Shown here in pieces: positions 704 through 24,663 of a stretch of DNA of 64,000 bases. The stretch is from Amoeboaphelidium protococcarum X5 (Eukaryota > Fungi > Aphelidiomycota). The position numbers and the translations under genes were made by a program. The notes under the pieces are model-generated. The model saw only the letters and a list, made by a program, of their open reading frames with translations, made no database searches and was not told where the DNA came from. The first letter of the stretch is position 1; each line of letters begins with the position of its first letter. Location of the stretch: the NCBI GenBank assembly GCA_023515725.1, contig JALDTO010000266.1, positions 1 to 64,000 on the forward strand, given 5' to 3'.

Positions 704-1699
704 ATGAAATCTACGTTAATTGCAGTTACTCTATTGGCAGCTGCCGCGCGTGCTGTGCCAACCTATCCTGCATACGATTAAGGTGATCAAGGATTTAATG
801 ATGACAGCGACTTGCAATATGGCGCGCCATAGTAGAATTAGTAGTTTGCTGGTAATTATTAGCCTACTCCTCCTAACTCTTTTAATGAGCGTCGTTCTCA
901 GTCATATGATTAGCTGCAATAGTATGGTGCTGCACAGCCGGAGGAACAGCAGTAGTATGCTAACAGTCCTCTTGCTCGTAATTCATATGACGACGCGTAT
1001 CCGTAGAATTATCAGAGATAGTAATCAGCTCCAAGATAGCATTCTAACGGCGGACTGGCTTACAAGCACCCATCGTTGCCTCGTAACTTTGTTCCTCCTC
1101 CGCAGCAGCAATAGCAGCAGCAGCAACAACAGTTGCAGCAGTAGTATAGCTCTGTTCCTCCATCCAACTCTGCTCCTGCTCAGTAGTATTAGCAGCAGTA
1201 GGCTGTAACTCAGGATCCATATGATGCAGCTGAGCAAAGTGAAAGCGATAATTTCAAGTTTGAAGATCCTCAACAGCAGACACCTGCTCCATAATAAGGA
1301 AGTCAAGCTGGTTAGGTCGCTGTTGCTGGTGGTGCTGCAGCTGGTGCCGCTACTGTCACTGGTGCATCTGCAGGTACCGGATCTGCTCCTGTGCAATAGT
1401 CACCACAACAGGAAGGAAGCAGCGATTTTGATGAGGCTTTCAAAACTGTGTGTCCTGGACTTTTCGGCAAGACCAAGATGTAGATTGTGACAGCTATCTC
1501 TAAGGCTGGTAGTATCTTTGCTGCATGTAAGTCTGACGCTGACGTGCAAAAGCCTCAGTAGCCTGCTGCTGGTGCTTCTGCAACTACTGAGTAGAGATTT
1601 GCTGAACCTGCTGCCCAACAATCCGCTCCATCTTCTGGTAGTTAGGCGCCTTAGGAGCCTGCTAAGAAGGGATTCTTGGCCAATCTGTTCAAGTGGTGA
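704..1699 (+). CDS. Secreted Gln/Pro/Ala-rich low-complexity protein (331 aa)
   Basis: Signal peptide MKSTLIAVTLLAAAARA; open to TGA 1697-1699 with TAR=Gln; polyQ of mixed CAG/CAA/TAG codons; C-terminus KKGFLANLFKW. Confidence 0.8.
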
Positions 1700-1893
1700 G
1701 TCGTGATAATTAACTCAAAGATGATTGAAGTATATACCGGAGCAATCTGACAACTGAATAAGTAGAATGGGAAATATTATAATAGTTTTGAAAATTATTG
1801 TTTCTTTTACGAGCTTTTAATCGTTTTCACTTCCTCCACTACAACTAGCATCGCAAATACTGCACCAGGTGGATCATTTCCTATTGGATCTAA

Positions 1894-3294
<1,401 letters not shown>

Positions 3295-3551: not shown

Positions 3552-5021
3552 TCAGTGACTTAATGACTACTATTTCATGCGGATAATTTTGTCGTAAATG
3601 TTATAAACTGTCTACGATGAAGATTCCCAAGATTTGTCACGCGCGAATTGTACAGCATTTTCTATCAACTTTGGATAGGCAAACTCCCGGTTGTATAGTC
3701 CATTGACTGCATTATAAATACGCTGATTATGATCCATGCTTTGTACAGCACCTTCTTCGTAAGTACTTATAATCCAGGACTCTCTTATGCGGATTATATC
3801 AACTACATTGTCGCAGAAGTTGCGAATTTTACTACTCTCAGAATCTTTATGATCAGTCTCCTCGACAAGCCTACCGCGACTATCATCCACCAGATCTGAT
3901 ACACCTCCTCTGTTACGAGCCAACACAACATTCCCACTTGCCATAGCTTCAATGCACACGTTACCAAGAGTATCGAATGATGAGGGAAACACAAAAATGT
4001 CACTAGCAGCATATGCCTGACTCAACTGCCCATCCTTCCAATAACATCCAGAATAGAATACCCGGTTCCCTTTGCCGTGCAGTCTGACCAAATCCCAGTG
4101 AAGTATTCCAGTTCCAATAATGACCAGGTAGGCTTTGATTTCACGTTGTGTCAAGTAATCCATCATGTGTACAAGCCAATGCAAGGACTTTTCAGGTGCA
4201 CATCTACCCACGTACAGTAAGATTGGCACCGTGTCGTACGCAGGATCATCGAATGTAAATACTTTGCGCCAATTAGCACTATCATTGTCAAGTTCATAAC
4301 ATGGCCGGAATTGCACGTTATCTACAGCAGGTGGCCAGATGTAATCGCACGTGATATGCTTCTCTTTATTCAGATACTCCTTTATGGGATTAGAGATTGA
4401 TATAACTGCATCAGCCAAGTTTAACAAACGCTCAAGTTGAAATATGCATTTAAACAACCACTTTGACGCGTCACTTATTGGCTAATGTTTGACCCACTCT
4501 GCTGTATGTTGATGATAGCTGGTCACCAGTGCTATGCTTTGAATATCATGGTCACCGGGACGTATCAACTTGCAGTACTTTAAAGCCAAGTAGAATGATA
4601 TGAATACTGCATCTGGTCCAACTACATGGATTACATCAGGTTTCAACTCCAAGATTTTCTGACACAGATGAGGTATCAGTACACCGAATGAATTTGCCAG
4701 TAAAGTCTCTGGAGCTAGATGAGATAGAGGTCGATATGAAGCTAATTGGATGATTGTAGCAGGGAAGTCTTTCAATTGCCTGATATCCAACGAGTCATCT
4801 CTAGGGATCAGTAGAGTGCAGTCTACAGCGTCATCTTCCTGCTTCCTCATTACGTCACCATCAAGATTACTCAGAGTAAAGTTTTGCTCTTCACCACTCC
4901 TTTCACCATTCAACACTGACGCCCCATGTATTTTGGATAAGCATCTCACAAAATGGTCGACGCGTTTACTTAGGCCATCAACCTTGGGATAGAAGGATGG
5001 TGTATATATCAAAACTTTCAT
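3552..5021 (-). CDS. GT4-family glycosyltransferase (GT-B fold; SQD2/MgtA-like)
   Basis: N-terminus MKVLIYTPSFYPKVDG, PDVIHV, SYHQH, LLYVGRCAPEK, YAASDIFVFPSSFDTLGNVCIEAMASG; the two track ORFs join through TAG at 4482. Confidence 0.88.
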
Positions 5022-5239
5022 ATTTTCTGTTAAAAGGCTGGCTTTATGAAAATCGATATACACAGTGTATCATTGTGAATAAAATGATGACATTGAAGGT
5101 TAATGGTTTGCACTGAAATAGCATCACTGACTTGTCATCTCTTTGACACATCAATGCATCATCAACTGGAGATACAATGACAACTTGCTCACATCACATA
5201 TCAAGGATAATATAGAATAACCAGAAACTCTGTATATAT

Positions 5240-7510
5240 TCACATCTTACTAAATACACTGGTGGTCGCTTCAGCATTACCATCTTTCTGCTCTTTCAAC
5301 TTGGCGCGGATAGCCTAAACAGCTTCTTTCAACTCAGACCGATCGAGATCATCGCGTTTGTACAGCAAATCTTCAATAAACTGCAGCGGTACATCATTAT
5401 ACGCCTTCCAAAGAGCATACCAAGATATAAATAGCACCGTGGAAGAACTCTCTAACACGGCAATAATCTTGTCCAGAACATCAAAAGTCTAGCGCACACG
5501 TTTGGGGCTCTTAATTTCGGACCAGAATGCAACACAAGTTATATACTCGCTTCTGAACTAATTCACAGCCTAAGGCATCTTCAATTTGCAATTCTTACTT
5601 TTCAAAGCCTGGATGACCAAGACAACAAAATGTTCAAGACTCTCACTGGATAATTTGGAGAAGAGATAATCCTGCAGATGTGCCTTGTAATCCTAGAGAT
5701 AGTCATTAAGTGTGGCGAGAACGCTCGGCATAGTGCTGTTCTCATACCAACTAGCAGTGAATAACTGAAACATTGCACCATTTATATCATTAAACATTAT
5801 CGTCTACAACACCGAGCATCCCTTCTTAGTGATACGCATAAAGCCCTCCATGACTTCATTCATCAATTTAGAGAACTCAGACTTGGCAGAGTCATCCAAC
5901 TTCTCTTCTAATCGCTTGTACACAGCTTCCAAATACTCGCTGCATTTGAGATTATTATTACTCAGAGCTATAACATACTCTGCGAATCCAGGTGCAAATT
6001 GGTCCTTCTTCATTAGGAATCTTTACTCCTCCTGCTCAAGCATTGTCAACTATTCACCCTGGAAATGTTTAAGAGTCCTCAAGCATTCGAATCCAACATC
6101 TGACAACAATCTACCTCCTTTAGCTGCATCAAACACAATGTCAATCTGCTGATTCACAATTTAGAATAGAATAACGGGCGCAGATGTGGCATACATCTCA
6201 TCAGAGTCGGTATCCGGTGCTTTATCCCTCTCTATGAAATCCTTCTTCTCACTCAACAACAGTCGGTCTACCCATTCAAGCAACTTGGTGCTGATCAACT
6301 TGACATAATCCCGAGATAACTTGGCCTCATTGTCATCAAGAAGCTTCGGCTCCAACAACTCCTCCGTGACACCAAGTCGATCATTCATCACCTTGTAATA
6401 ATCTCTGACCCAGCCAAGAACTAGGAGAATATCCTTGGTCTCCATATCACCGCGCTGTGTCAATCTATTGAGAAGATCATACGTCAACTTGTGGTATTAC
6501 AGAACATAAAACGGAAATATCTTGTACTTTGGTGGAAATCTGACAGAAATTTCGTCAAACACCAGAGCCAGATCATTAAAGATAAAGTGACTATTCTCTA
6601 ACGCATCCGCCACTGAATCTTCTGATGGTATCATTCTACGGTAATGAATCTAAATCGACTCTAGGATACTATTCAACAGCTGGCTTCTATAATTCTTGAT
6701 ACTCCTCGATAATATCGCCTCACTGACAACCTGTATACTGGTAATATTATTACTTTACTACTGCGACTGCCCAATGCTGCCAGATGACTACTGCATTCGA
6801 TGTTGACACTCCATTACTTGTTCATCCGCCATCTCCTCAACCTCGACAATCTTACAAATCTTCACCAGAACTTGGCCTTGATCTTCCTTCACAAGCTCCA
6901 GGATATTCTATCCAAGTGTCCATAGATACTCGCGAAATTACTCAGATAGAGAATCTAGACGTTTAAAGTATTTATTGATAATGTTAATAACTGTCGGTCC
7001 CTGAGTCTTGGCCTAGTGCACGGTAATATCTCTAAACTCTTCCAGTTTATACAACTCATAATGAATCTGAAGCAGAGAATCAGCGGGTCCAAGTATATTC
7101 TCACTCTCCACTCTGATCATTTATGACAATCTTTCAACGTCTTGACTCAGAGCTTAGAATCTCACAATGATTTCCTTGGTCTTGACAAAGTTCTGGTGCG
7201 TCTTACTAATACGCTTAATCTTGTCATAGTTTTAAATCTAAATCTGACTATTCTTGCACACATCTTCCACTTACTTTACCCATTCCTACATAGACTTGAT
7301 GGATTACTCACTTCTTTTCAAAGCTGACAGACTCTCCTCATATCCGTCCAGCTTGTCTCCAACCACACGCTTCAGAACGGCGTCCAGGCTCTACTTCTCC
7401 TACTGGTACTTTGCAATCAAGTGAGGGAGCTTAGTTTGCAAATCCTCTGGCTAAGGCAACAACTAAGCCACCTTCTACTAAGCCTCTTCCAGCGCATCTG
7501 CCAACGACAT
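5240..7510 (-). CDS. SEC6: Exocyst subunit Sec6/EXOC3
   Basis: 756-aa ORF with TAR=Gln; LLQIHYELYKLEEFRD, RFPPKYKIFPFY, APDTDSDEMYATSAPVILF, YVIALSNNNLKC, DLLYKRDDLDRS. Confidence 0.9.
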
Positions 7511-7753
7511 TTTTATAACCACTGGATGTTTACTTACTTGAAATATCAATGCAAATTTTGATACAAAAAGAAGTGCAACAGCCAGCTACTTGTCGACGAA
7601 CAGAAAAAGAGAACTAGCAGGCCGAAAGTAACGCGAGTGAACTGACAGGCTGAAACGCGCGCTTCGTTTTGTTTGAAGAATGTGAAACGAAAGGATACTT
7701 TGAGCAATGCAATTTAACTCGCTGTGTTGAAGTCAAAATCATTGTCACAGTTA

Positions 7754-8167
7754 TCATTCAAGATCCAAGTCAACAATTTCCGTGATTTTACCAACGACTT
7801 TCTCTGCCATTTCAAAGTCGGCCCAGACGCGTAAATCAAGCTGCGTGATATCAGGATACTTTTTGCTAACACTTGTTGTAGTTTATTGACCACTCCTATG
7901 AACTCCAACACGACATTATTTAAGAGTTACGTTAACACCATCATAAATAGTCTGCAGCATCTTAATATTTGACTCGACGAGATACTGAAAAATGTCATGC
8001 CCATGCAAACTATCTTTCTGTATCAGCTTTTCCCTAGTTAAATACAACCAGTTTTGATAAGCCAGCAACTGCTTTTCTTCAAGCTCATTGATTAACTGTT
8101 CTGGTTTAGGCTGCAGAGAGTTTAGATAATTTAAAAGACCAATGATATCTTCATTAAAATCAGACAT
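7754..8167 (-). CDS. Internally deleted mini-paralogue (137 aa) of the REase-kinase gene at 22364-23929
   Basis: Residues 1-118 align with the N-terminus of the long gene up to VWADF, then continue directly into its C-terminal EMAEK...VDLDLE*; intact ATG-TGA frame. Confidence 0.8.
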
Positions 8168-8270
8168 GGCTTATATATCAAAAGATAAATTAGAAAATAA
8201 TTCCAAGATGGAAGAAAAGTTGACCGTGATTTGATTTGAGATCCCATAATCGAAAGTTGATCCTAATTGA

Positions 8271-8307
8271 TCCAATCAGTGAAATGGAGGCAGTCACGCG
8301 TAATAAT
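8271..8307 (-). promoter_or_regulatory. Conserved upstream block shared by both REase-kinase copies, containing ACGCGT (MCB-like) and CCAAT
   Basis: 37-nt perfect identity between paralogue upstream regions while adjacent sequence diverges; about 90-140 nt upstream of each ATG. Confidence 0.5.
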
Positions 8308-9505
8308 CGTTACTTTACGATTTGGCTGTCATGACTAAAGATATATTGACGTGGGACGAAAATTGCATGTACAAAAGTAGATGAATTTTAAAAATGCCAT
8401 ATGGCGGGTCACAACTTAGCAATAAAGTGAAGGCAATAAGACGTAGAATTGCTCCAATACTGTATTTCTTTTGCAGTTGAGGGGTGAAACGAAAAGCGCG
8501 TGTTTAAAGGGCCGCATTGCCAGGAATACGTCTCAGCACAGTACCAGATGAAACACTGTAAAACTACGCTTATCTTTCTCGTATTCCGATTGATAGGTAT
8601 AGCTTAAAAGGAAATGCCATTTGATTGCTCTCTTTTGTTACCTACGCTATTAATATTGTTACAATCTAAATCCCTAAAGTAAAGGATCCGTCAATGTTGA
8701 CATCTATGACACGCTTTAGTCTTGAAAACCTCGGGAACAGTAAAATCATTCAACGGGTGACTATAGAACTCTCTCAAGCCATTACTTTGCTTTGTTATTT
8801 CGCAGCTAAAAAAGGAAACATGTAGCAGGTGCCACGTAAAGTATTTTAGCAGAGACAGGTCATTAGGCCTGTTCACTGAGCAACTTCTACTGTACATAAG
8901 CTGAAACAGCATGGAATAAGTTGCTAAAGAAAATGCGATAACAAAGCGCTTAATGATTGACAAGTGAAATAAGAAAATCATATCTTTGTAACAGATAAAG
9001 GTCAGCAACTGTTAGACGGTGGTTCACTAGGCAACTGACTAGTGAGTACACCTGACGTATAGCCATCCTAAGAAGCCAACTGGCTCAATTGAAAACAACT
9101 GCTTCCAAAATAACTACTGTTATTATTCATATTCCTATATTTCAAACTGTCAATGTCAAAGTAAATTATTCCCTGGAGAAGAGGCGACAATGAGGCGCTT
9201 TCGCGTTTCACTCAACTCATCTTGATTACAGTCAGCTACAGTCAGATCTAACAGCAACCGCATATCGATGGAATACACTACCTACTTAATGAGCGGCAAC
9301 AAAGTTTCATATACTTTTAGGCTTATTACTGAGCAAAAATGATGGAGGTGCGAAAAATTGTCTGATACTAACAATACCGTGCATTATGGTACACGGTTGA
9401 TATATCCTTTAACTGCCTAATGATAGTGGAGATCAACGCGAAAAAAAGCTTAAACATAATACGTAATTCATTTTAATTAAAAATCATATCTTACAGAAGA
9501 CGCCG

Positions 9506-9859
9506 TCAGTATTTACCAGCGTTATTTATTTGCGAAGTCAAATCAGCGACCGTGGCCTGCAGTTAATCACGCTTTGTAATCATCTCATTCAGATAGTCTA
9601 CCGTCTTTTATAGTATCACAGCCTCACTTTTATTCTACTTATTACTTTTGTCTTGCAGCGATGGTACCAATTACTATAATTCTTTAAATCTATCCCGCAA
9701 TAATTATCTCCGCTTCTATTCTGATTACATGTGAGGCTTCTTTGATTGTTCGGTGCTCACGCTCTCCGCCAATCCTCCATCTTCGTCTTCATTTTGGCCA
9801 TCACTACCAGCATCTGCTTATAGATTTTACATTCTATCATCCATTTATTCACCAGACAT
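9506..9859 (-). CDS. Small bHLH(-ZIP) transcription factor, Ino4/Mlx/Max-like (117 aa)
   Basis: HMQSEQKRRQLLRDRFKELQQLVPSL...KSEAVILQKTVDYLNEM followed by a zipper; missing from the ORF track because of TAR codons. Confidence 0.88.
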
Positions 9860-10061
9860 ACTAATGGATTATAAATTTAAAGCAGTCACTTTATTTTTAA
9901 ATCGCGTCGCAATTTGGCGTGTTCAACTTTCATAGAAAACGAAAGATCAAGATCAAAGCACTAAGACCCTGACAATTTAAAATGTCAAGTCAAGATTATA
10001 TCAACAATTTTTATAAAACACTGCTATTCACTTATTACAAGCTAAACAAATCAACCAAAAA

Positions 10062-11471
10062 TCAATCCAAATCTGCCGAGAGTGCACTATCTTTGTGAAA
10101 TCTCTTCTGATTACGAGCTGCAAGTTGATCTCTGCTCTGTTGTCTCTTGTCAACCTTCCTCTCATCATTAGCGAGTTTCTTCATTTGACGCACAGCCTTT
10201 TTGCTTTGTTTCTAAACCGGTTCTAGAGCTAACTCTTGCTGGTTCTATACCACATAACTTGATCTTCCATAATGTACAGAGTCACACAGGATAGTGTGCA
10301 AGTTATCGTCGGAATTCTGGATTAGTGTGTCGTAAAATTCGCCTTAAGCAAGTCGAAGAAACTCAACCTTACGCTTCACCTGATGTCTACTGTCTTGTCC
10401 ACTTTAACTGACTGCAGATTCATCGCCATCACTTTGATACGCATCAGCATGTAATAGTTCGCAATCCAAAGCATTAGAATACTCGCGAAACAACTTCTTC
10501 TACTCTTTCCTCTCTTTTTTATGAATCTTCTTTACACTTTTAAACTAACCAGCTTGGTCTTGCATTCCGGAGCTAAGGTTCTACAGCTGAGAACTAAATT
10601 GATTCTCATAACGAGCCAGCAATTAATCTACATCCTCAAATGAATTGTCGCTGAGATACGATTTTATTTCCAATAGAATAAGGTAATTCTCAGCTGCTCT
10701 AGATTTAACATCCAGTTTATCGGAGCCCAAACAATCAAGATAATAGTCCAACAGCTACTCCAGCGCGTCAATTCTGATAGAACCTGCTTATGGCGAGCGA
10801 GGTGCAGATTCGCTCATCTTTTGCCAATAATCTGCAATTAAATGGGGAAGCGTCGCCAATATGTATCCTTCACACAAAAGAGCGGATGCTTAAAACTAGG
10901 CAGAGTTAACGCCTAGATCCAATAATCTACCATAAAGTTCGTCAACATCTAGAAAATCATTTTTACACACATCAGCTGCAACAACTATACTGGTTAAAGC
11001 ATAAATCACATTAACATCCAGATTACTATCCTTGATGCTAGGTGATGGCTAAAAATGCTTCAACAATGCCTTGACACTATCTTTCACCACTTCACTAGAG
11101 TCTATGGCATCATTATCATATAATAGGAACTACGATCGACCAAGCATTTTACAAGCAAGAGCAATTTCGTTACTATCTTGACTATTTTTGACGATTCTGA
11201 TCAAGGCATGCCATAAATCGCTGCACTATGTTCCATCTAAGGCACCATCAGAGTAAATCGAAGGTAGGTGTTTAATTATTGATTTCAAAGCCTCAACTCT
11301 GATTTAAGTTCGCTTCTCTCCAAGTAGCTAGATACTGTCTTTCAAATCAAATCCACTAGTCTACTCGTCACCAGACTCATATGCAGCTTCACTGGTCACG
11401 GCATCGACATCAACATCCATCGAGTCTCTGATGCTACTCTTCTCTTATTTATTATTCCTCTTACGAGGCAT
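10062..11471 (-). CDS. IFRD (interferon-related developmental regulator)-like protein
   Basis: 469-aa ORF; N-terminal LGEKRTQIRVEAL, central armadillo-like helices, KKERKEQKKLFRE and basic C-terminus, as in IFRD1/2. Confidence 0.7.
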
Positions 11472-11750
11472 TTCTCTAGATAATTTTTCAGATTATTTTA
11501 CAACTCCGGCTTTAAGATGGAGAGTCAAATTCGCTACGGGTATTAAGCTGGAGCAGAAGTCTAAAGTACAATAATATTCGAATATAAGTGAGAGTCGTAT
11601 GATTGATTGTTCGCACAGTGATGAATGCTGAGTGGCGGCGATAAGCGAAACAATGCTGAAACAATCACCGACGAGTCACACTCTGCGACAATGAATGGAT
11701 GGCATAACTTGAAAGAGTTTATATTGAAATATTCGAGCGTATTACGATAT

Positions 11751-13460: not shown

Positions 13461-13601
13461 TGAGTGTTGCAACGTTTCAGTGAAATGAAAAAATGTTAAT
13501 GTATTCTGTAGTCACCATGACTACAAAGAGATAATTTTATAAACTTAAAATACAAGCTCGTATTAAAAATCCAGACAAGAAGAGACTTTATTACATTCAT
13601 A

Positions 13602-13880
13602 TCACTTTGCCAACATCTGAGCACACTTATTCAATAGAACACTGACTTCCTCAATGTCCTTGACCACAATTTGAATGTCGTCAGACATCGTTTCAGACTT
13701 GGAGTTCAACGCGTGCACGCGCTGTGCCAGATGAGTTCTGTGAGTTGCAAATAGAGCCTTGAACGCGCCCATCAACTGATCTTCAATAGATTACAACTAC
13801 ATCAACTATTGATTATGGAACTCTTTAATTTACTAGCCAAATTTGTGCTCAATTTCATCAGACGTATTGTTATTATTCAT
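13602..13880 (-). CDS. Hypothetical small coiled-coil protein (92 aa)
   Basis: ATG-to-TGA ORF with TAR=Gln filling the gap between kinesin and SUA5; helical heptad-like composition. Confidence 0.6.
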
Positions 13881-13985
13881 TGTAATGTATGCAGAACCAG
13901 TTAATTGTAGTAGAGACAAGAGATAGACGTCGATAAGGAGAAAGAGAGGCTGAAACAATGAGAAAACTTTAAGTTCATCAAAATT

Positions 13986-15029
13986 TCACTGAGCCGATTT
14001 TTTTAAACGATCCATAACAGCAGCTCCAAGACCACGATTGCTTACAATGGGAGCATAGATAATACTGCATCCCATTTCATCCAAATATCTCAAGGCGTGG
14101 AACAAATGCTTTGCGTATATTACGTTCTCCTCATCTGACTAAATATCATAAATGACATGCTTAGATCCATCTTCACAGCGTTCTCTAATTTCAAACTCAA
14201 GAGAAGAATCATTCAGTTATGTGAGACGTATTAAGCCAATACAACGACCGGAACCATTTAATGAAAGCTCATTAATATCAGAATATAATCGAACACTGGC
14301 AGATGGCGCGTAATGTTTGTACTTCATACCGGGTGTAGCAGGCTTATTGGTATCAATCAGTGAATGTCTAGACGCGTCAAAATACTCTGCATTCTCATAA
14401 CCGCGTGCTTTACGTAAATCCTCAAGCGAAAGACCTCCTGGTCGCAATATCAATGGAGTACCAAGGATCGTGAGTGCATCGACGACAGTACTTTCTAATC
14501 CGACAGAACACTCTTCATCCGCATCCTGTATAATCAATGAAATCAGACCATCAAGATCATTCATTACGTATGCAGCACGCGTAGGAGACACCTTAGTCGA
14601 GAGATTGGCTGATGGAGCAGAGAGCGGTTTGCCCACACGGCGGATTATTTCTCGCGCAATAGGATTGGCTGGACATCTAACACCGACAGTACCTTTGCAC
14701 GGGATTCTGAGTATAACAGTGAGTGGACCTGGCCAATATTTGGATAGTAATTCCAAATATATCTGCGGTATGTGGCCATAAAATCTATACGCCATCTCAA
14801 TATCACAAACGTGTTCAATCAATGGATTATCGGAGGGTCGATTCTTAACTTTGTAAATCTTTTGCACAGCCTCAGCATTAGTGGAATCAGCAGCCAAACC
14901 GTACACAGTCTCTGTAGGAATAGCCACCAGCTCTCCCGCTATCAATAAATCCACGGCTTCTTTAATATTCTTATCATCTTAGATATCACCCACTGATACC
15001 GATGCTATACGCGTATTATATGAATTCAT
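13986..15029 (-). CDS. SUA5: Threonylcarbamoyl-AMP synthase Sua5
   Basis: VAIPTETVYGLAAD, KNRPSDNPLI, PLSAPSANLS, GLESTVVD, PGMKYKHYAP, GLGAAVMDRLKK. Confidence 0.96.
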
Positions 15030-17119: not shown

Positions 17120-18850
17120 TCATAACATCTCGACGACATTTGTCCTGGAATCGACAAATGGATTATCGGAAATTGCACCGGATTACTTTGTTCGCTTTGG
17201 AGACACTTTAGTACCGGCTTTGAGAGAGGCTGGATGATCCAGAGATGCAGCAGATGGAGACAGAGGGGTTTTCAATGTCAATTTCTTCACTTTCGTTGAT
17301 ACTGAAAGCTCATCATCAACTTTAATAGACTTTTTCTCAACTACACCAGATGATTACGATTTTAGTGATTTATTCATAGTAGTTTTGTTATTGTTATTAT
17401 TGTTCTTGTTCTTGGGCAAAATAGTGGATGTATGCTTCTTCTTTCTTGCTTACATTGCGTGATCCAGTTCATTAACGATAGACCATATATGAGCGCAAAT
17501 ACTGTCAGCTTCACCCAGCCAGGTGACATCGAACAAATCCTTCCACTCTGCACCAATCGGTGTTTTATTTATCAACACTGTTCTGATAGGGCGCTTAGGA
17601 GGATTAATAGAAGCACGGCGATTCTTAGTACTTGCGTTCAACTTGGCTCTATTCACACCTGAACCATTATGGAAATGTTCATCACCATCACCACCACCAT
17701 CTGCAATATCATCCAAAGATTTAACTTATCGAGCAAAATCCCTAACCAAAGTCTTGATACCGGCCACTTTGAGGGTAGTGCCCATGACAAGCAGTAGATC
17801 TGGTCTCTTCTTCAGGTCAGACTCCCAACACTATCCAATGGTGTCACAGGCAGAGTGATGTTCACTGTAGAGAATAATATCCGGCCTCAGAATGCCAATA
17901 GGAAGAGATCTCTTACTAGCACGTTCTCTCTACTAAGAACTGCTAAGACAACGAGGACAGGCAGGCGGTTCACCTCCCGAGAATATGCGTGAATGAACAT
18001 CATTAAACTCTTCCCGGTGCTTACAGACGGTACACGAGACATACTGCAGAGTGCCATGAAGCATGACAACATCCGACTTTTTATCTTCCAAGTCACAGGT
18101 CATTGATAGCCGCTCCTCCATGCAATCAATATTTTGAGTGTAACAACGCAACAGCTTACCTTTATCTTTGACATTCTTTAGAAATTGGTGCACTTCAGTA
18201 GGCGATGCTTTATCCACCATCTGCTTCAATTCCGCCATAAAAGAGTAGAAAACCTTGGTGCTAGCTTCATCTTTAAACAGATGGGCATCGAATATGTCCT
18301 TACCTTTCACCACGGCATCCGGGTACTTTTACTTCACCATATTGTACAAGCCATTCATTGAGCGAAAGTCTGGTATTCCACCACTGACACTGATACCAGC
18401 TCCGGTGACAATCACTATTCGCTTAGCCTTGTGCACAGCATGAACAACATCATCCGCAATATTACGATGTGGATGCAGAGTAGTTGTATCAACCACATTA
18501 TCATGCAGTATCGAGCCCTTCTACAATGGTATTTTTGCTTTCAATCGAGAGATATCTTTATCTCTTTGATCGTCAGTTGAATTAGAGGAAGATGACTATG
18601 ACAATGTGACTGACGATGTCGTTGTGGTGGACACTGCAGAGTACATTTACGATTTCTTCACCAAATGACCACCATCAGCAGATAGGATATCAACCACACT
18701 CTATTTCACAAAAGTCTTGGACTGGGTCTTTTATACAGCCCCAGATTACTATTTCATTTTATTTTACATTTTAATTTACGCAATTTCATCATTATTATTC
18801 TCCTTGCCACGGATGATAGTGGTCTGCTCCTTTTATCGACGACTTATCAT
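17120..18850 (-). CDS. NAD-dependent deacetylase, Hst3/Hst4-like sirtuin
   Basis: TGAGISVSGGIPDFRS, YTQNID, MLHGTL, CTVC/CPRC zinc site, LRPDIILY; start could be a downstream ATG such as 18646. Confidence 0.92.
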
Positions 18851-19347
18851 ACTGTTGTTGTACTTAACAAACACTCAATCCACCACACAAATTTTAGTAT
18901 TTCTATCACTGAGCAGTAAACCACACAGATATAATGCAAATATATAGGCAGACGATAATTCTATATGGAGTATGAGCAGTATAATGTAACGTAGCAGTGG
19001 TGAGTCTGTCTGTTGTTTGATGAGGAAGACGACGATGGACACTTTTCACCAGAAACAGAATTTCCTTCGTTTCACTTTTCTCTTTTTGGGTGATTGGAGA
19101 GAGTGAGAGAGAGAATGTGCGAGACGCGAAACATCAAGCCCGCAGTTATTGAAGAGAGTCACTCAACGACGACGACCTGTGCACTTGATCGTTAAAGATT
19201 CGTTCATTGATTCCATTTAAACTGTAAGAAAAGGTCAAAGTCGGCTGTGTCATAGTATCATCGCGAGTAAATCAAAAATCCATCAGCGCAACTTGAATGA
19301 AACAAAAAGAGATGATAAAACAATAGCAAATATAAAAGCTCTCTTCC

Positions 19348-21334: not shown

Positions 21335-21988
21335 TCAAATGTCATCGTCGTTCAAGAAAGAGGCAGGGATGGTCACTTTTTCACCTTGTTTAAAAGCAGG
21401 CATACCAGCATACGGACATGAGGCACATCTAAACGCGTCACCTAGATAACAACTACCACATGATGACTTGAATTCAGGATCGACTGCTTTTGGGACGGAG
21501 GCAGCTGATGGTTGTTCTGATGTTTTCTTTGATAGATTTGATTCCTCTTCAGCACGACCACAAGTGCAATCTTTACAAGCCTTCTTCTTGGTCTCACAAT
21601 TTGCTCTAAGTGAATCCGCGGATGGCTTTACGTAATCAGCTTCATCAATCAGCGCGCTTTCATCAATTAAATCATCATCGTTATTATCTTCTGCAATAGG
21701 CTTTGATTCCGCTTGTTTCTTTGCCAATTTCAAAGGTCTTGCTCCACCTTAGGTGACTTTAGAGCGGATAGCAGTTACCATAGTCTGATCTTTGCCTGTA
21801 CCGTCGGCTGATTACACATTTTAGAATCCATTGAAAAGCAACTCTTGCTTCAAAGCACTGACACTTGAGGACTAGACGAGTATAGAGATGGACTCGCCCG
21901 GAGCAACAGACTATGACTATTATAAATTTTTCACAAAGAGTCCAATATCTTCGCTATAACGAATTGTCAATTATTTCTAATCGCCCAT
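21335..21988 (-). CDS. DRE2: Fe-S cluster assembly protein Dre2/anamorsin
   Basis: [11 protein letters not shown] and [31 protein letters not shown]; short N-terminal domain. Confidence 0.95.
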
Positions 21989-22363
21989 AATTATAAATTG
22001 TCCTTATCTTTTAAGACGTTGACAATAGTGTAAAAGCCTTTGAAAGGAAGAAGAGCTAAAGAGAAAATCAAAAAATAACGTTTCGACTTTTGGGACAATT
22101 AACGCTCAATTCGCCTTTACTTTGTAGAATGAGTAGTGACCCACCATATTGCACTACTGAAATTCAATTTTCCATCCAATTTATTTAACAGGCTTACTCT
22201 ATTGTTAGTTATATCACAGCCAAATCGTACTGTCACAATTATTACGCGTGACTGCCTCCATTTCACTGATTGGACCACGATCAACTTTCGATTATAGGCC
22301 TTAAAATCACGATCAACCTTTTTCCTCCTATCACTCATACGTAAAACTTTTATCGTATAAGCA

Positions 22364-23929
22364 ATGTCTACTATAAATAAAAAAATCATAGGCCTTTTAA
22401 ATTATCTGAACTCTCTACAGCCTAAACCAGAATATTTGATCAATGAGCTTGAAGAAAATCAGTAGTTGGCTTATCAAGATTTGCATTTCTCAACTAGGGA
22501 ATAGCTGATACAGAAAGACAGTTTGCATGGGCATGACATTTTTCAGTATCTGGTTGAGTCAAATATTAAGATGCTGCAGACTATTTATGATGGTGTCAAC
22601 GTAACTCTTAAATAATGTCGTGTTGGAGTTCATAGGAGTGGTCAATAAACTACAACAAGTGTTAGCAAAAAGTATCCTGATATCACGCAGCTTGATTTAC
22701 GCGTCTGGGCCGACTTTGATTAAGGGGTTGTAGATTTTATGGCTCAGGTACCTGATCAAGAGTTTGGTAGGAATATACCATTGCAAATGTAGAGCTCTGT
22801 CCGTGATGAATCTTAAGTGTAAGCCTTGTGTGATAGTACGTTATTTACAGTACTTTCTGTGTGCTGTCGGTCACTCTCGTAGCATAATGATTACGCGTAT
22901 TTTGGTAGCAACTGCGGCTTTGCACCTGTTTCGGGCAGCTCAGTATTGGGGGATCCAGATCGAATTTGGTTATCTGATGAAGACAAAACACTATCTAAAC
23001 TAACAGTAGAATTTAAGACTCCTTGGGCTATTGAAAGTCTTTTTGATTTGATTCCGAGATACAATGAAGGATACGTTGACTTTGAGACTAAAAAGTAAAA
23101 GTGCACCGACGCGGTTGATAAGGTTCACAAAGGTAAGATCATAAGAGCGGTCGAGCAGATTTATGTCTACATGACTCTAAACCGCCACCGCTATGGTGTA
23201 CTTACCACATTCAATGAGACGGTGTTTTTCCGCAAAGTTGAAGATCCTGATCAGGAAGAGCGATCAGTGCTGGAGTGTTCACCGGTCATTAGATGTTCTC
23301 AGATATAGCCGTACACATTAGTAGGTGCGTGGATCTACTTGCTGTCTCTGATTGAACGCTCTGCTAATGATTGGATGTAAGCATCACCTCATAGCAGCAC
23401 CGTTGTAAGTCCGGCTCTCATTAGAAAAGCTCATGTGATTAGTTACAAGTCAGTCAATCTGGATGCGTACTGCCATTGGACGAATATTATTTATCGCGGT
23501 AGGTTTGGTGCGGTTGCTTTAGGAAATTTTGCAGATTAATAAGGAGTCATTTTCAAGACTGTGGACCTGTCAAAGAAACCAAATGCATTACAAAAGTTCA
23601 ATAATGAGGTTGAAGTGTACAAAGCTCTGGATTCATTGTAGGGCACAGTGATTCCAAAGTTCATCGCGTACGGTACTCTGTGTGGTATGCTGCAGGTTAT
23701 CGTGTTGGAAAATGTCGGATCATATATGAATACTGAGCAGTTTGGAAAACGTAAAGTTGATGTCTATGATGCTCTTGATAAAATCCATGCTCTTGGTTAT
23801 CGACATGGAGATGTTCGATTGCCGAATATGACCGTTGACAGTTGTGGACGCGTCCGCATTATTGACTTTGAAATGGCTGAGAAAGCGGACGGTAGAATTG
23901 TTGAATTTGTTGACTTGGATCTTGAATGA
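22364..23929 (+). CDS. Crinkler/RHS-type effector-like protein: header + PD-(D/E)xK nuclease + protein kinase (521 aa)
   Basis: GDPDRIW...VEFKTPW, AVEQIYVYMTLNRHRYGVLTTFNETVF (REase); YRGRFGAV, IFK, NEVEVY, LQGTVIPKF, HGDVRLPN, IIDFEMA (kinase); intronless. Confidence 0.85.
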
Positions 23930-24663
23930 TGATTGAAATTGTGATTACGGTTCTGTGTAATTACAATTGCATTGCTTAAAACTATTCCAGCTTTTCTCTT
24001 TTCAAGCATGTAAGACTGAAGTATTCTTTTTGGGGAGTTTTTGTTGAAGAGTGCTCACGCGGTTCATTAGTGTTTTGATATGATTCAAATCTTAGCATTG
24101 AGTATATAGTAACATACAGACGAAAGAAACGTTTTACTTAATCGTATACTCTAACAGTCGGTGCGCTAATATGTAAATAGTTTAGATTTCATAACAATTA
24201 ATGAAACTTGTGTTTGCTTTTGGGCTAAATATATTAATAAGAATATGAGAAAACTTTTGAGTTACGAGTATGGTAACAATGTTCTATCTCAGTCTGCTCT
24301 GAGGCTCTCCCCTTCTACTAATGGCATCTATCGCGCTTCTCTGATCCGATCACTCGATTGAACAACTTTTGCAGTATATCCTTTCGCTTCTGCCTCCAGC
24401 TACGAGAATCGGTGTCCCGCTATGATGAAATCGATCTGACAAATCGTTCTCTGTAAAACTTGAAACGATACGCTGAGATGATTCCGATTATGGAAATTAA
24501 AGTAAATGGCTGGGAATGTTTTGTAAGACAGAATCATTTCCTGTTTCAGAGGAGTTTTAACGCGCTTTCGTTTCATGTTCAATCGCGCTCTCTTCCTTTT
24601 TAGCCGTTCAACTTGTCATTCTGCTAAGGCCTATATGCAATTACATCACGTTTTGTTGAAACT

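Follow-up and report, generated by a model that had tools for sequence, protein, structure and literature searches.

The window analysed here comprises the initial 64 kb of contig C264 (2.5 Mb) in the 23.6-Mb assembly of the aphelid Amoeboaphelidium protococcarum, a parasite of algae (locus tags MIR68_). It carries a short gene on the minus strand near 8 kb, here called the mini, and a long relative of that gene on the plus strand near 22 kb. As read from alignments to its orthologues, the mini derives by deletion from the nuclease-kinase gene resident at this site, and the deleted allele is carried by one of the four haplotypes compared. It is most likely a non-functional relic of the resident gene (we put the probability of this at roughly three in four). 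A first-pass annotation of the window had proposed an in-frame loss of 1152 nt at an 8-bp microhomology, and this is supported by the alignment to the long gene and to the orthologous alleles. The same annotation took the mini for a copy of the 22-kb gene and the two for a full-length/mini pair. The true counterpart is instead the resident gene, which is full-length on contig C206 of the same assembly and also in the two haplotypes of another strain with the same species label (locus tags MP228_).

In this genome, TAA and TAG have to be translated as Gln, and TGA taken as stop, before any long open reading frames (ORFs) emerge. Under this code, eight paralogues of the long gene stay open over 509–530 codons, with 15–22 in-frame TAA or TAG codons per gene, and their pairwise ratios of non-synonymous to synonymous substitution rates (dN/dS) are 0.15–0.57. 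Given the low dN/dS and the long open frames, these are real, constrained genes, and the code is supported. Proteins with in-frame TAA or TAG were handled as stop-free pieces, as annotated proteins or by table-6 translation. NCBI holds protein records identical to both ORFs (P0006 for the mini and P0001 for the long gene). Rfam and tRNA scans of the 64-kb window gave no match.

A deletion allele at the 8-kb site

The features on which the comparison rests are as follows (window coordinates).

4500–11500, no strand: region collinear, at ~90% identity, with C206 (haplotype B) and both MP228 haplotypes.
7754–8167, minus strand: mini ORF (P0006), 137 codons, intact, with two in-frame TAA codons (Gln) and a TGA stop.
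7812–7819, minus strand: deletion junction, with a single GACTTTGA; full-length alleles carry two, 1152 nt apart.
8168–8347, minus strand: 5′ untranslated region (UTR) and upstream region common to the family, including a 37-nt block.
22364–23929, plus strand: long gene (P0001), 521 codons, a full-length paralogue in cis, 14 kb away and inverted, which the conversion tract in the mini resembles.
22712–22719, plus strand: first GACTTTGA of the long gene, codons D-F-D, 348 nt from the ATG.
23078–23085, plus strand: second GACTTTGA of the long gene, 714 nt from the ATG and in the same phase; missed at first pass.
23864–23871, plus strand: third GACTTTGA of the long gene, in the kinase DFE motif, 1500 nt from the ATG and in the same phase.

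The flanks of the mini (4500–7700 and 8350–11500) are collinear with contig C206 at 86–92% identity. At the exact position of the mini, C206 carries a full-length gene (P0007, MIR68_007466) of 521 amino acids (aa). In the sample in which the locus is present, the read contigs fall into two variants of about equal depth, and C206 has the alternative letter in 30 of 30 cases; C264 and C206 are therefore two haplotypes of one strain (A and B, respectively). The two MP228 haplotypes, L046 (97.4% identical to C206) and L047 (93.7% identical to L046), are both ~90% identical to the window and encode full-length proteins (521 and 523 aa) at the collinear site. The neighbours there are those seen in the window, with genes for HLH, IFRD and kinesin proteins on one side and for Sec6, GT4 and enolase on the other. 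When the window was aligned to L046 and L047, the gap was exactly the missing segment. Because the three other haplotypes are full-length at the same spot, the deletion in the mini is derived and private to one haplotype of four.

Haplotypes A and B are ~8–10% apart in DNA. For the pair formed by the 22-kb gene and its C206 counterpart, synonymous divergence (dS) is 0.30. This value was considered as proof that the loci had separated before the haplotypes did, an argument that was dropped because allelic dS values of neighbouring genes are 0.15–0.37. The larger size and gene number reported for A. protococcarum (~24.7 Mb and 13,180 genes, compared with 13.6 Mb and 7,568 genes in A. occidentale; PMC10608142) fit an assembly that holds two divergent haplotypes. 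In paralogue comparisons within this genome, alleles must first be told from paralogues.

Alignment of the mini to the long gene (BLASTN) gave a head (8332–7812, minus strand, to 22213–22719, 86.5% identity) and a tail (7819–7753, minus strand, to 23864–23930, 83.6%). Between the two, 1152 nt (384 codons) of the long gene are unmatched. The mini protein consists of family residues 1–118 joined to the last 19 residues, which follow the kinase DFE motif. The measurements made at first pass (coordinates, octamers, length and frame of the gap, the 137-codon ORF, identical runs of 37 and 122 nt, and 11 mismatches in 58 nt) were all confirmed.

The octamer is kept at all three positions, in one codon phase, in all seven close paralogues and in both MP228 alleles; the spacing of the two outer copies in MP228 haplotype C is 1158 nt rather than 1152 nt. 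Judged by these alignments, the GACTTTGA match at the junction is not due to chance. Since the octamers at 348, 714 and 1500 nt share one codon phase, any deletion between them is in frame. Since TGA is the sole stop, an ORF of 137 codons can remain open for long and premature stops accrue slowly. The first-pass annotation had taken the in-frame junction and the open ORF as pointing to a function. Both are expected without selection and, at the level of sequence, neither gives any sign of it.

The upstream block, said earlier to be retained, is indeed identical in the two genes over 37 nt (8271–8307, minus strand; 22238–22274, plus strand). It is common to all close paralogues, and was simply inherited by the mini. 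The block holds ACGCGT (MCB/MluI-box-like) and ATTGG (a CCAAT box on the opposite strand), which are possible candidates for cell-cycle-type promoter elements of the family; ACGCGT is found again within the coding region.

The mini is also a mosaic, which was mapped by sliding-window mismatch counts in which every paralogue and each of the three orthologous alleles served as reference. Two features describe it.

7812–7978, minus strand: conversion tract at its largest extent, where it reaches the junction; the core 7889–7931 is certain, and the length is accordingly 43–167 nt.
7754–7811, minus strand: 58-nt tail past the junction, with 4 mismatches to C206, MP228_B and MP228_C versus 11 to the long gene.

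Within the core of the tract, the mini matches the 22-kb gene without exception and has ten differences from the C206 allele. The 122 nt at 7812–7933 (minus strand) are 100% identical to 22598–22719. The tract belongs to the type of the 22-kb gene and its relative on C214, not to the type of the resident locus; therefore, the donor was the 22-kb gene or a close relative. The remaining parts of the mini locus (5′ flank, 5′ UTR and first codons, N-terminal coding part, tail and 3′ flank) are orthologous. Gene conversion, suggested at first pass to account for the mosaic, is supported in that the mini is an orthologous allele with one conversion tract adjoining the junction. The 5′ UTR and first codons were considered as a second tract, derived from the group of paralogues on C107 and C135. 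This was ruled out by the match to MP228 haplotype C, whose allele is the nearest to 8138–8257.

The parent family and the parts removed

A structural model of P0001 was predicted with AlphaFold from a 29-sequence alignment (predicted local distance difference test, pLDDT, 85; predicted template modelling score, pTM, 0.84). It begins with a 5-helix header (residues 1–65, pLDDT ~90), followed by a conserved linker that is disordered at residues 91–103 and has a strand at 111–114. The next part is an alpha-beta-beta-beta-alpha-beta unit in which D199 lies just before the second strand and E216 and K218 lie at the end of the third. In the family alignment P198, D199, E216 and K218, which form a PD-x16-ExK signature, are near-invariant, as is Q265. 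Model and alignment together identify a putative PD..ExK nuclease-like domain (restriction endonuclease, REase, fold) in the parent family. A VRR_NUC match in P0005 is faint (E 0.08), and stop-free segments taken from the header and from the nuclease part had no usable match in Pfam. The lists from fold searches of the PDB (Foldseek and VIA) were filled by kinases, and no solved nuclease was matched.

The C-terminal protein-kinase-like fold of P0001 is confirmed. From ~residue 360 onwards we identified a G-loop, K398, E415, the HGD..N catalytic loop and DFE, and the protein stops 17 residues past DFE. The fold is supported by a Pkinase match (E 1.4e-5, profile positions 7–149), by Foldseek (E ~1e-7) and by VIA (Z 16.2, 145 residues aligned, root-mean-square deviation 2.5). 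Homologues in A. occidentale, several chytrids and metagenomes have in common all that lies from ~residue 66 on, and all end soon after DFG.

The kinase of this aphelid/chytrid family is itself short. In P0001 (residues ~370–521, window 23470–23929) and in all homologues aligned, it ends 15–25 residues past DFG or DFE (profile positions 7–149 of 263) and is without an activation segment or C-lobe helices. The aphelid copies carry DFE and the chytrid ones DFG. A stand-alone 172-aa cluster from Mucoromycota has the same minimal-kinase shape (template modelling score, TM, 0.84).

The deleted 384 codons include all of the near-invariant residues P198, D199, E216, K218, Q265, K398 and E415. The HGD..N loop, which is conserved but not near-invariant, also lies within the deleted part. 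With these catalytic residues both enzyme domains are lost, as had been noted at first pass. The mini retains the header, the partly disordered linker and a 19-residue acidic tail, and the sole catalytic residue left is the Asp of the fused DFE. The junction (residue 118/119) is not at a domain border; it lies inside a conserved core that is common to the chytrid homologues, where W115 and F118 are nearly invariant.

In protein searches, the header was seen in this Amoeboaphelidium family only. A word-index search with it, limited to proteins of 45–143 aa, returned the mini alone. An exhaustive header search found no second protein of 45–143 aa, and no annotated mini in MP228. An ESM Atlas search with the mini gave no usable match.

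In CR/Crinkler effectors, C-termini commonly combine a REase domain with a kinase, for example in Phytophthora infestans CRN8 (Zhang et al., 2016, as cited in PMC5289972), and alpha-helical headers exist in CR proteins besides the ubiquitin-like one (PMC5289972). The parent family is like these REase-kinase effectors in that a PD..ExK nuclease-like domain precedes a kinase. Unlike Crinklers, it is without the ubiquitin-like LxLFLAK header, in place of which the model has the 5-helix N-terminal domain. The Pfam Crinkler family (PF20147) was not matched in the family proteins at E up to 0.1, and inspection of P0001 by eye revealed no signal peptide. Ranked by structure, the top neighbour of the model in the ESM Atlas is a cluster from Mucoromycota, with Pfam Crinkler in 91% of its members and Pkinase in 89% (TM 0.45 over 303 residues); the next is a two-domain cluster from Ascomycota.

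The SPOK spore killers of Podospora, in which the nuclease kills and the kinase protects (PMC6660238), offer a second comparison; such killing, resistance and meiotic drive are known from Podospora alone. As in the parent family, a helical N-terminal part is followed, in one polypeptide, by a nuclease of the PD-(D/E)XK type and a short kinase at the C-terminus; also shared are variation in copy number and in presence or absence between haplotypes or strains, and the occurrence of pseudogenised copies. Unlike SPOK, P0001 is without the C-x3-C-x13-C-x5-H-x7-H cysteine cluster between the nuclease-like and kinase parts, and has C-x5-C and a later C-H. Language-model features of residues 66–345 led to Ascomycota clusters, one of them with Pfam SPOK2_N (PF27653), at a score of 0.93, which serves as a lead only. 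A profile word search with the family reached aphelids, chytrids and metagenomes, and not the Ascomycota SPOK proteins. By analogy, the parent family might be a SPOK-like single-gene toxin-antidote system that segregates by presence and absence between the two divergent haplotypes, with the gutted allele as a disarmed driver or as a header-only modulator that would interfere with full-length copies by associating through the header, an idea to which we give a low probability. As the nuclease kills and the kinase protects in SPOK, a product without both domains could neither kill nor protect.

Origin of the mini and the case for a relic

Haplotype A lost 1152 nt between two in-phase conserved octamers (GACTTTGA, D-F-D/E). 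The loss probably came about by microhomology-mediated end joining, by slippage during replication, or by break repair with the inverted paralogue 14 kb away as template; the last of these would account for the paralogue-like tract next to the junction as well. In one history, a single repair event may have copied from the inverted paralogue before annealing at the second octamer. In the other, the deletion may have come first and conversion later, bounded by the end of homology. A tract ending at the junction fits both histories, which are indistinguishable here. The deletion removed the PD..ExK nuclease-like domain in full, and the part of the kinase that precedes DFE. This loss was probably tolerated, with an intact paralogue 14 kb away on haplotype A and a full-length allele on haplotype B.

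The mini is like the pseudogenes and null alleles that arise by microhomology deletion in multigene families undergoing conversion, in its derived state and in having its junction at a short direct repeat. The locus is also like that class in its lost catalytic parts, its paralogue patches and the presence of other broken copies in the family. Unlike usual pseudogenes, the mini retains frame, start, stop and upstream block, and a short product is still possible.

Several observations weigh against a relic. The mini ORF is intact, its conserved upstream block is retained and NCBI annotates it as a gene, so it may well be transcribed and translated. The header, confidently modelled as a compact helical domain, could fold alone. 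The private substitutions in the mini are three non-synonymous (I4F, Q47K and D125V) and three synonymous, which corresponds to an omega of ~0.3, near the family range; relaxation is not evident from these six events. In addition, dimerisation and a dominant-negative effect are reported for a kinase-dead mutant of the REase-kinase Crinkler effector PiCRN8 (PMC5289972). These points favour a functional mini-protein, in which a header-plus-tail product would modulate full-length members by header-mediated hetero-oligomerisation, as a decoy or as a dominant-negative (or would confer immunity, as was also suggested at first pass), and a full-length paralogue lies 14 kb off on the same haplotype.

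We nevertheless regard such a function as unlikely. The three non-synonymous and three synonymous changes, some of which may predate the deletion, reject neither neutrality (binomial estimate, P ~0.16) nor constraint, and two of the three non-synonymous ones hit otherwise invariant positions. The allele occurs in one haplotype, and the three others are full-length. The search of the 45–143 aa range yielded no other protein of mini length, and the junction cuts a conserved core instead of following a domain boundary. An in-frame junction and an open ORF are expected by chance in a TGA-only code. Further, if the family acts like SPOK, self-protection requires the kinase (PMC6660238), which the mini does not have.

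It is very improbable that the deletion is an assembly artefact, with haplotype A really full-length and the 1152-nt gap introduced by assembly or polishing. The contig has haplotype-A-specific sequence on both sides of the junction, collinear with the flanks, over a total length of 2.5 Mb. Support for the junction at read level is indirect: Logan assemblies of four runs (one sample) hold 77–86% of the 31-mers of 7300–8700, with depth in both bins at the junction. An artefact would not be expected to land exactly on an in-frame 8-bp microhomology. In favour of an artefact, the locus is part of a multi-copy family, no Logan contig among the matches listed bridges the junction, and at 7934 none of the aligned read contigs of sample S1 carries the assembly letter. 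The lack of a bridging unitig in the list is explained by the identity of 7812–7933 to the paralogue, which keeps de Bruijn unitigs short.

Positions 7934 and 8093 both carry synonymous letters private to the mini, and that at 8093 is backed by one run and not by another. These discrepancies may stem from de Bruijn bubbles of very small length or from errors left in the assembly. A second sample with the same species label holds 6% of the words of the locus, and in one of its contigs the tail is directly continuous with kinase sequence, consistent with a full-length allele in that sample.

Copy number and turnover of the family

A genome-wide search identified seven close copies that are full-length, several others that are diverged or broken, and a single mini. 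The long gene lies in the following segment.

21993–24460, plus strand: segment bearing the long gene, 2468 bp; haplotype B has ~194 bp of unrelated sequence instead (C206:186808–187000).

Haplotype A is therefore gutted at 8 kb and intact at 22 kb, and haplotype B is intact at 8 kb and has no copy at 22 kb. We found no annotated MP228 orthologue of P0001 at ≥90% identity. Next to the long gene is a host ORF (21335–21988, minus strand). The copies on C107 (~13600–14055) and C135 (~18570–19025) bring with them ~450 nt of the 5′ part of this host ORF (window 21541–21992), which shows that they arose when the 22-kb locus was duplicated as a segment, and not by transposition of a defined unit. A search around 21993–24460 found neither terminal inverted repeats nor duplicated target sites.

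Among the broken copies, C264_2068k is divided between two gene models, P0004 and P0037, and those on C98 and C162 are frameshifted or partial. MIR68 has at least eight intact family genes plus several fragments. Three annotated family proteins were found in MP228: two are intact, both at the 8-kb locus, and one is frameshifted. Copy number thus differs markedly between MIR68 and MP228, two strains under one species label. This set of copies shows a family that undergoes birth and death.

The frameshifted MP228 protein is MP228_004475 (452 aa; L048, JALECJ010000020.1:1263149–1267712, gene at 1501–3064). A +1 frameshift lies in its nuclease-like domain, and the annotation masks it within a 205-nt 'intron'; the locus is full-length-sized. 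Another fragment of the family is present ~1 kb downstream of this gene.

The first-pass annotation also raised the possibility that the mini is an internally deleted, non-autonomous but still mobilisable copy within a mobile family, which is the least credible explanation: the presence or absence of the 22-kb copy between haplotypes and the unequal numbers in the two strains (at least eight intact versus two intact and one frameshifted) would suit it, but the mini is at the ancestral syntenic site of a full-length gene and so did not move, terminal repeats and target-site duplications are absent around the 22-kb segment, and the host-gene sequence carried by the C107 and C135 copies points to segmental duplication.

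As a single locus, the mini is of little weight. It provides a clean, datable microhomology deletion beside a conversion tract in a multigene family. It also serves as a warning that, in a TGA-only code, an intact ORF and an in-frame junction are uninformative on function. More interesting than the locus is the aphelid/chytrid nuclease-kinase family itself, which resembles both the Crinkler REase-kinase effectors and the SPOK killers. If the members of this family act as toxin-antidote or effector genes, the locus would offer natural full-length, deleted and empty alleles with which this could be tested.

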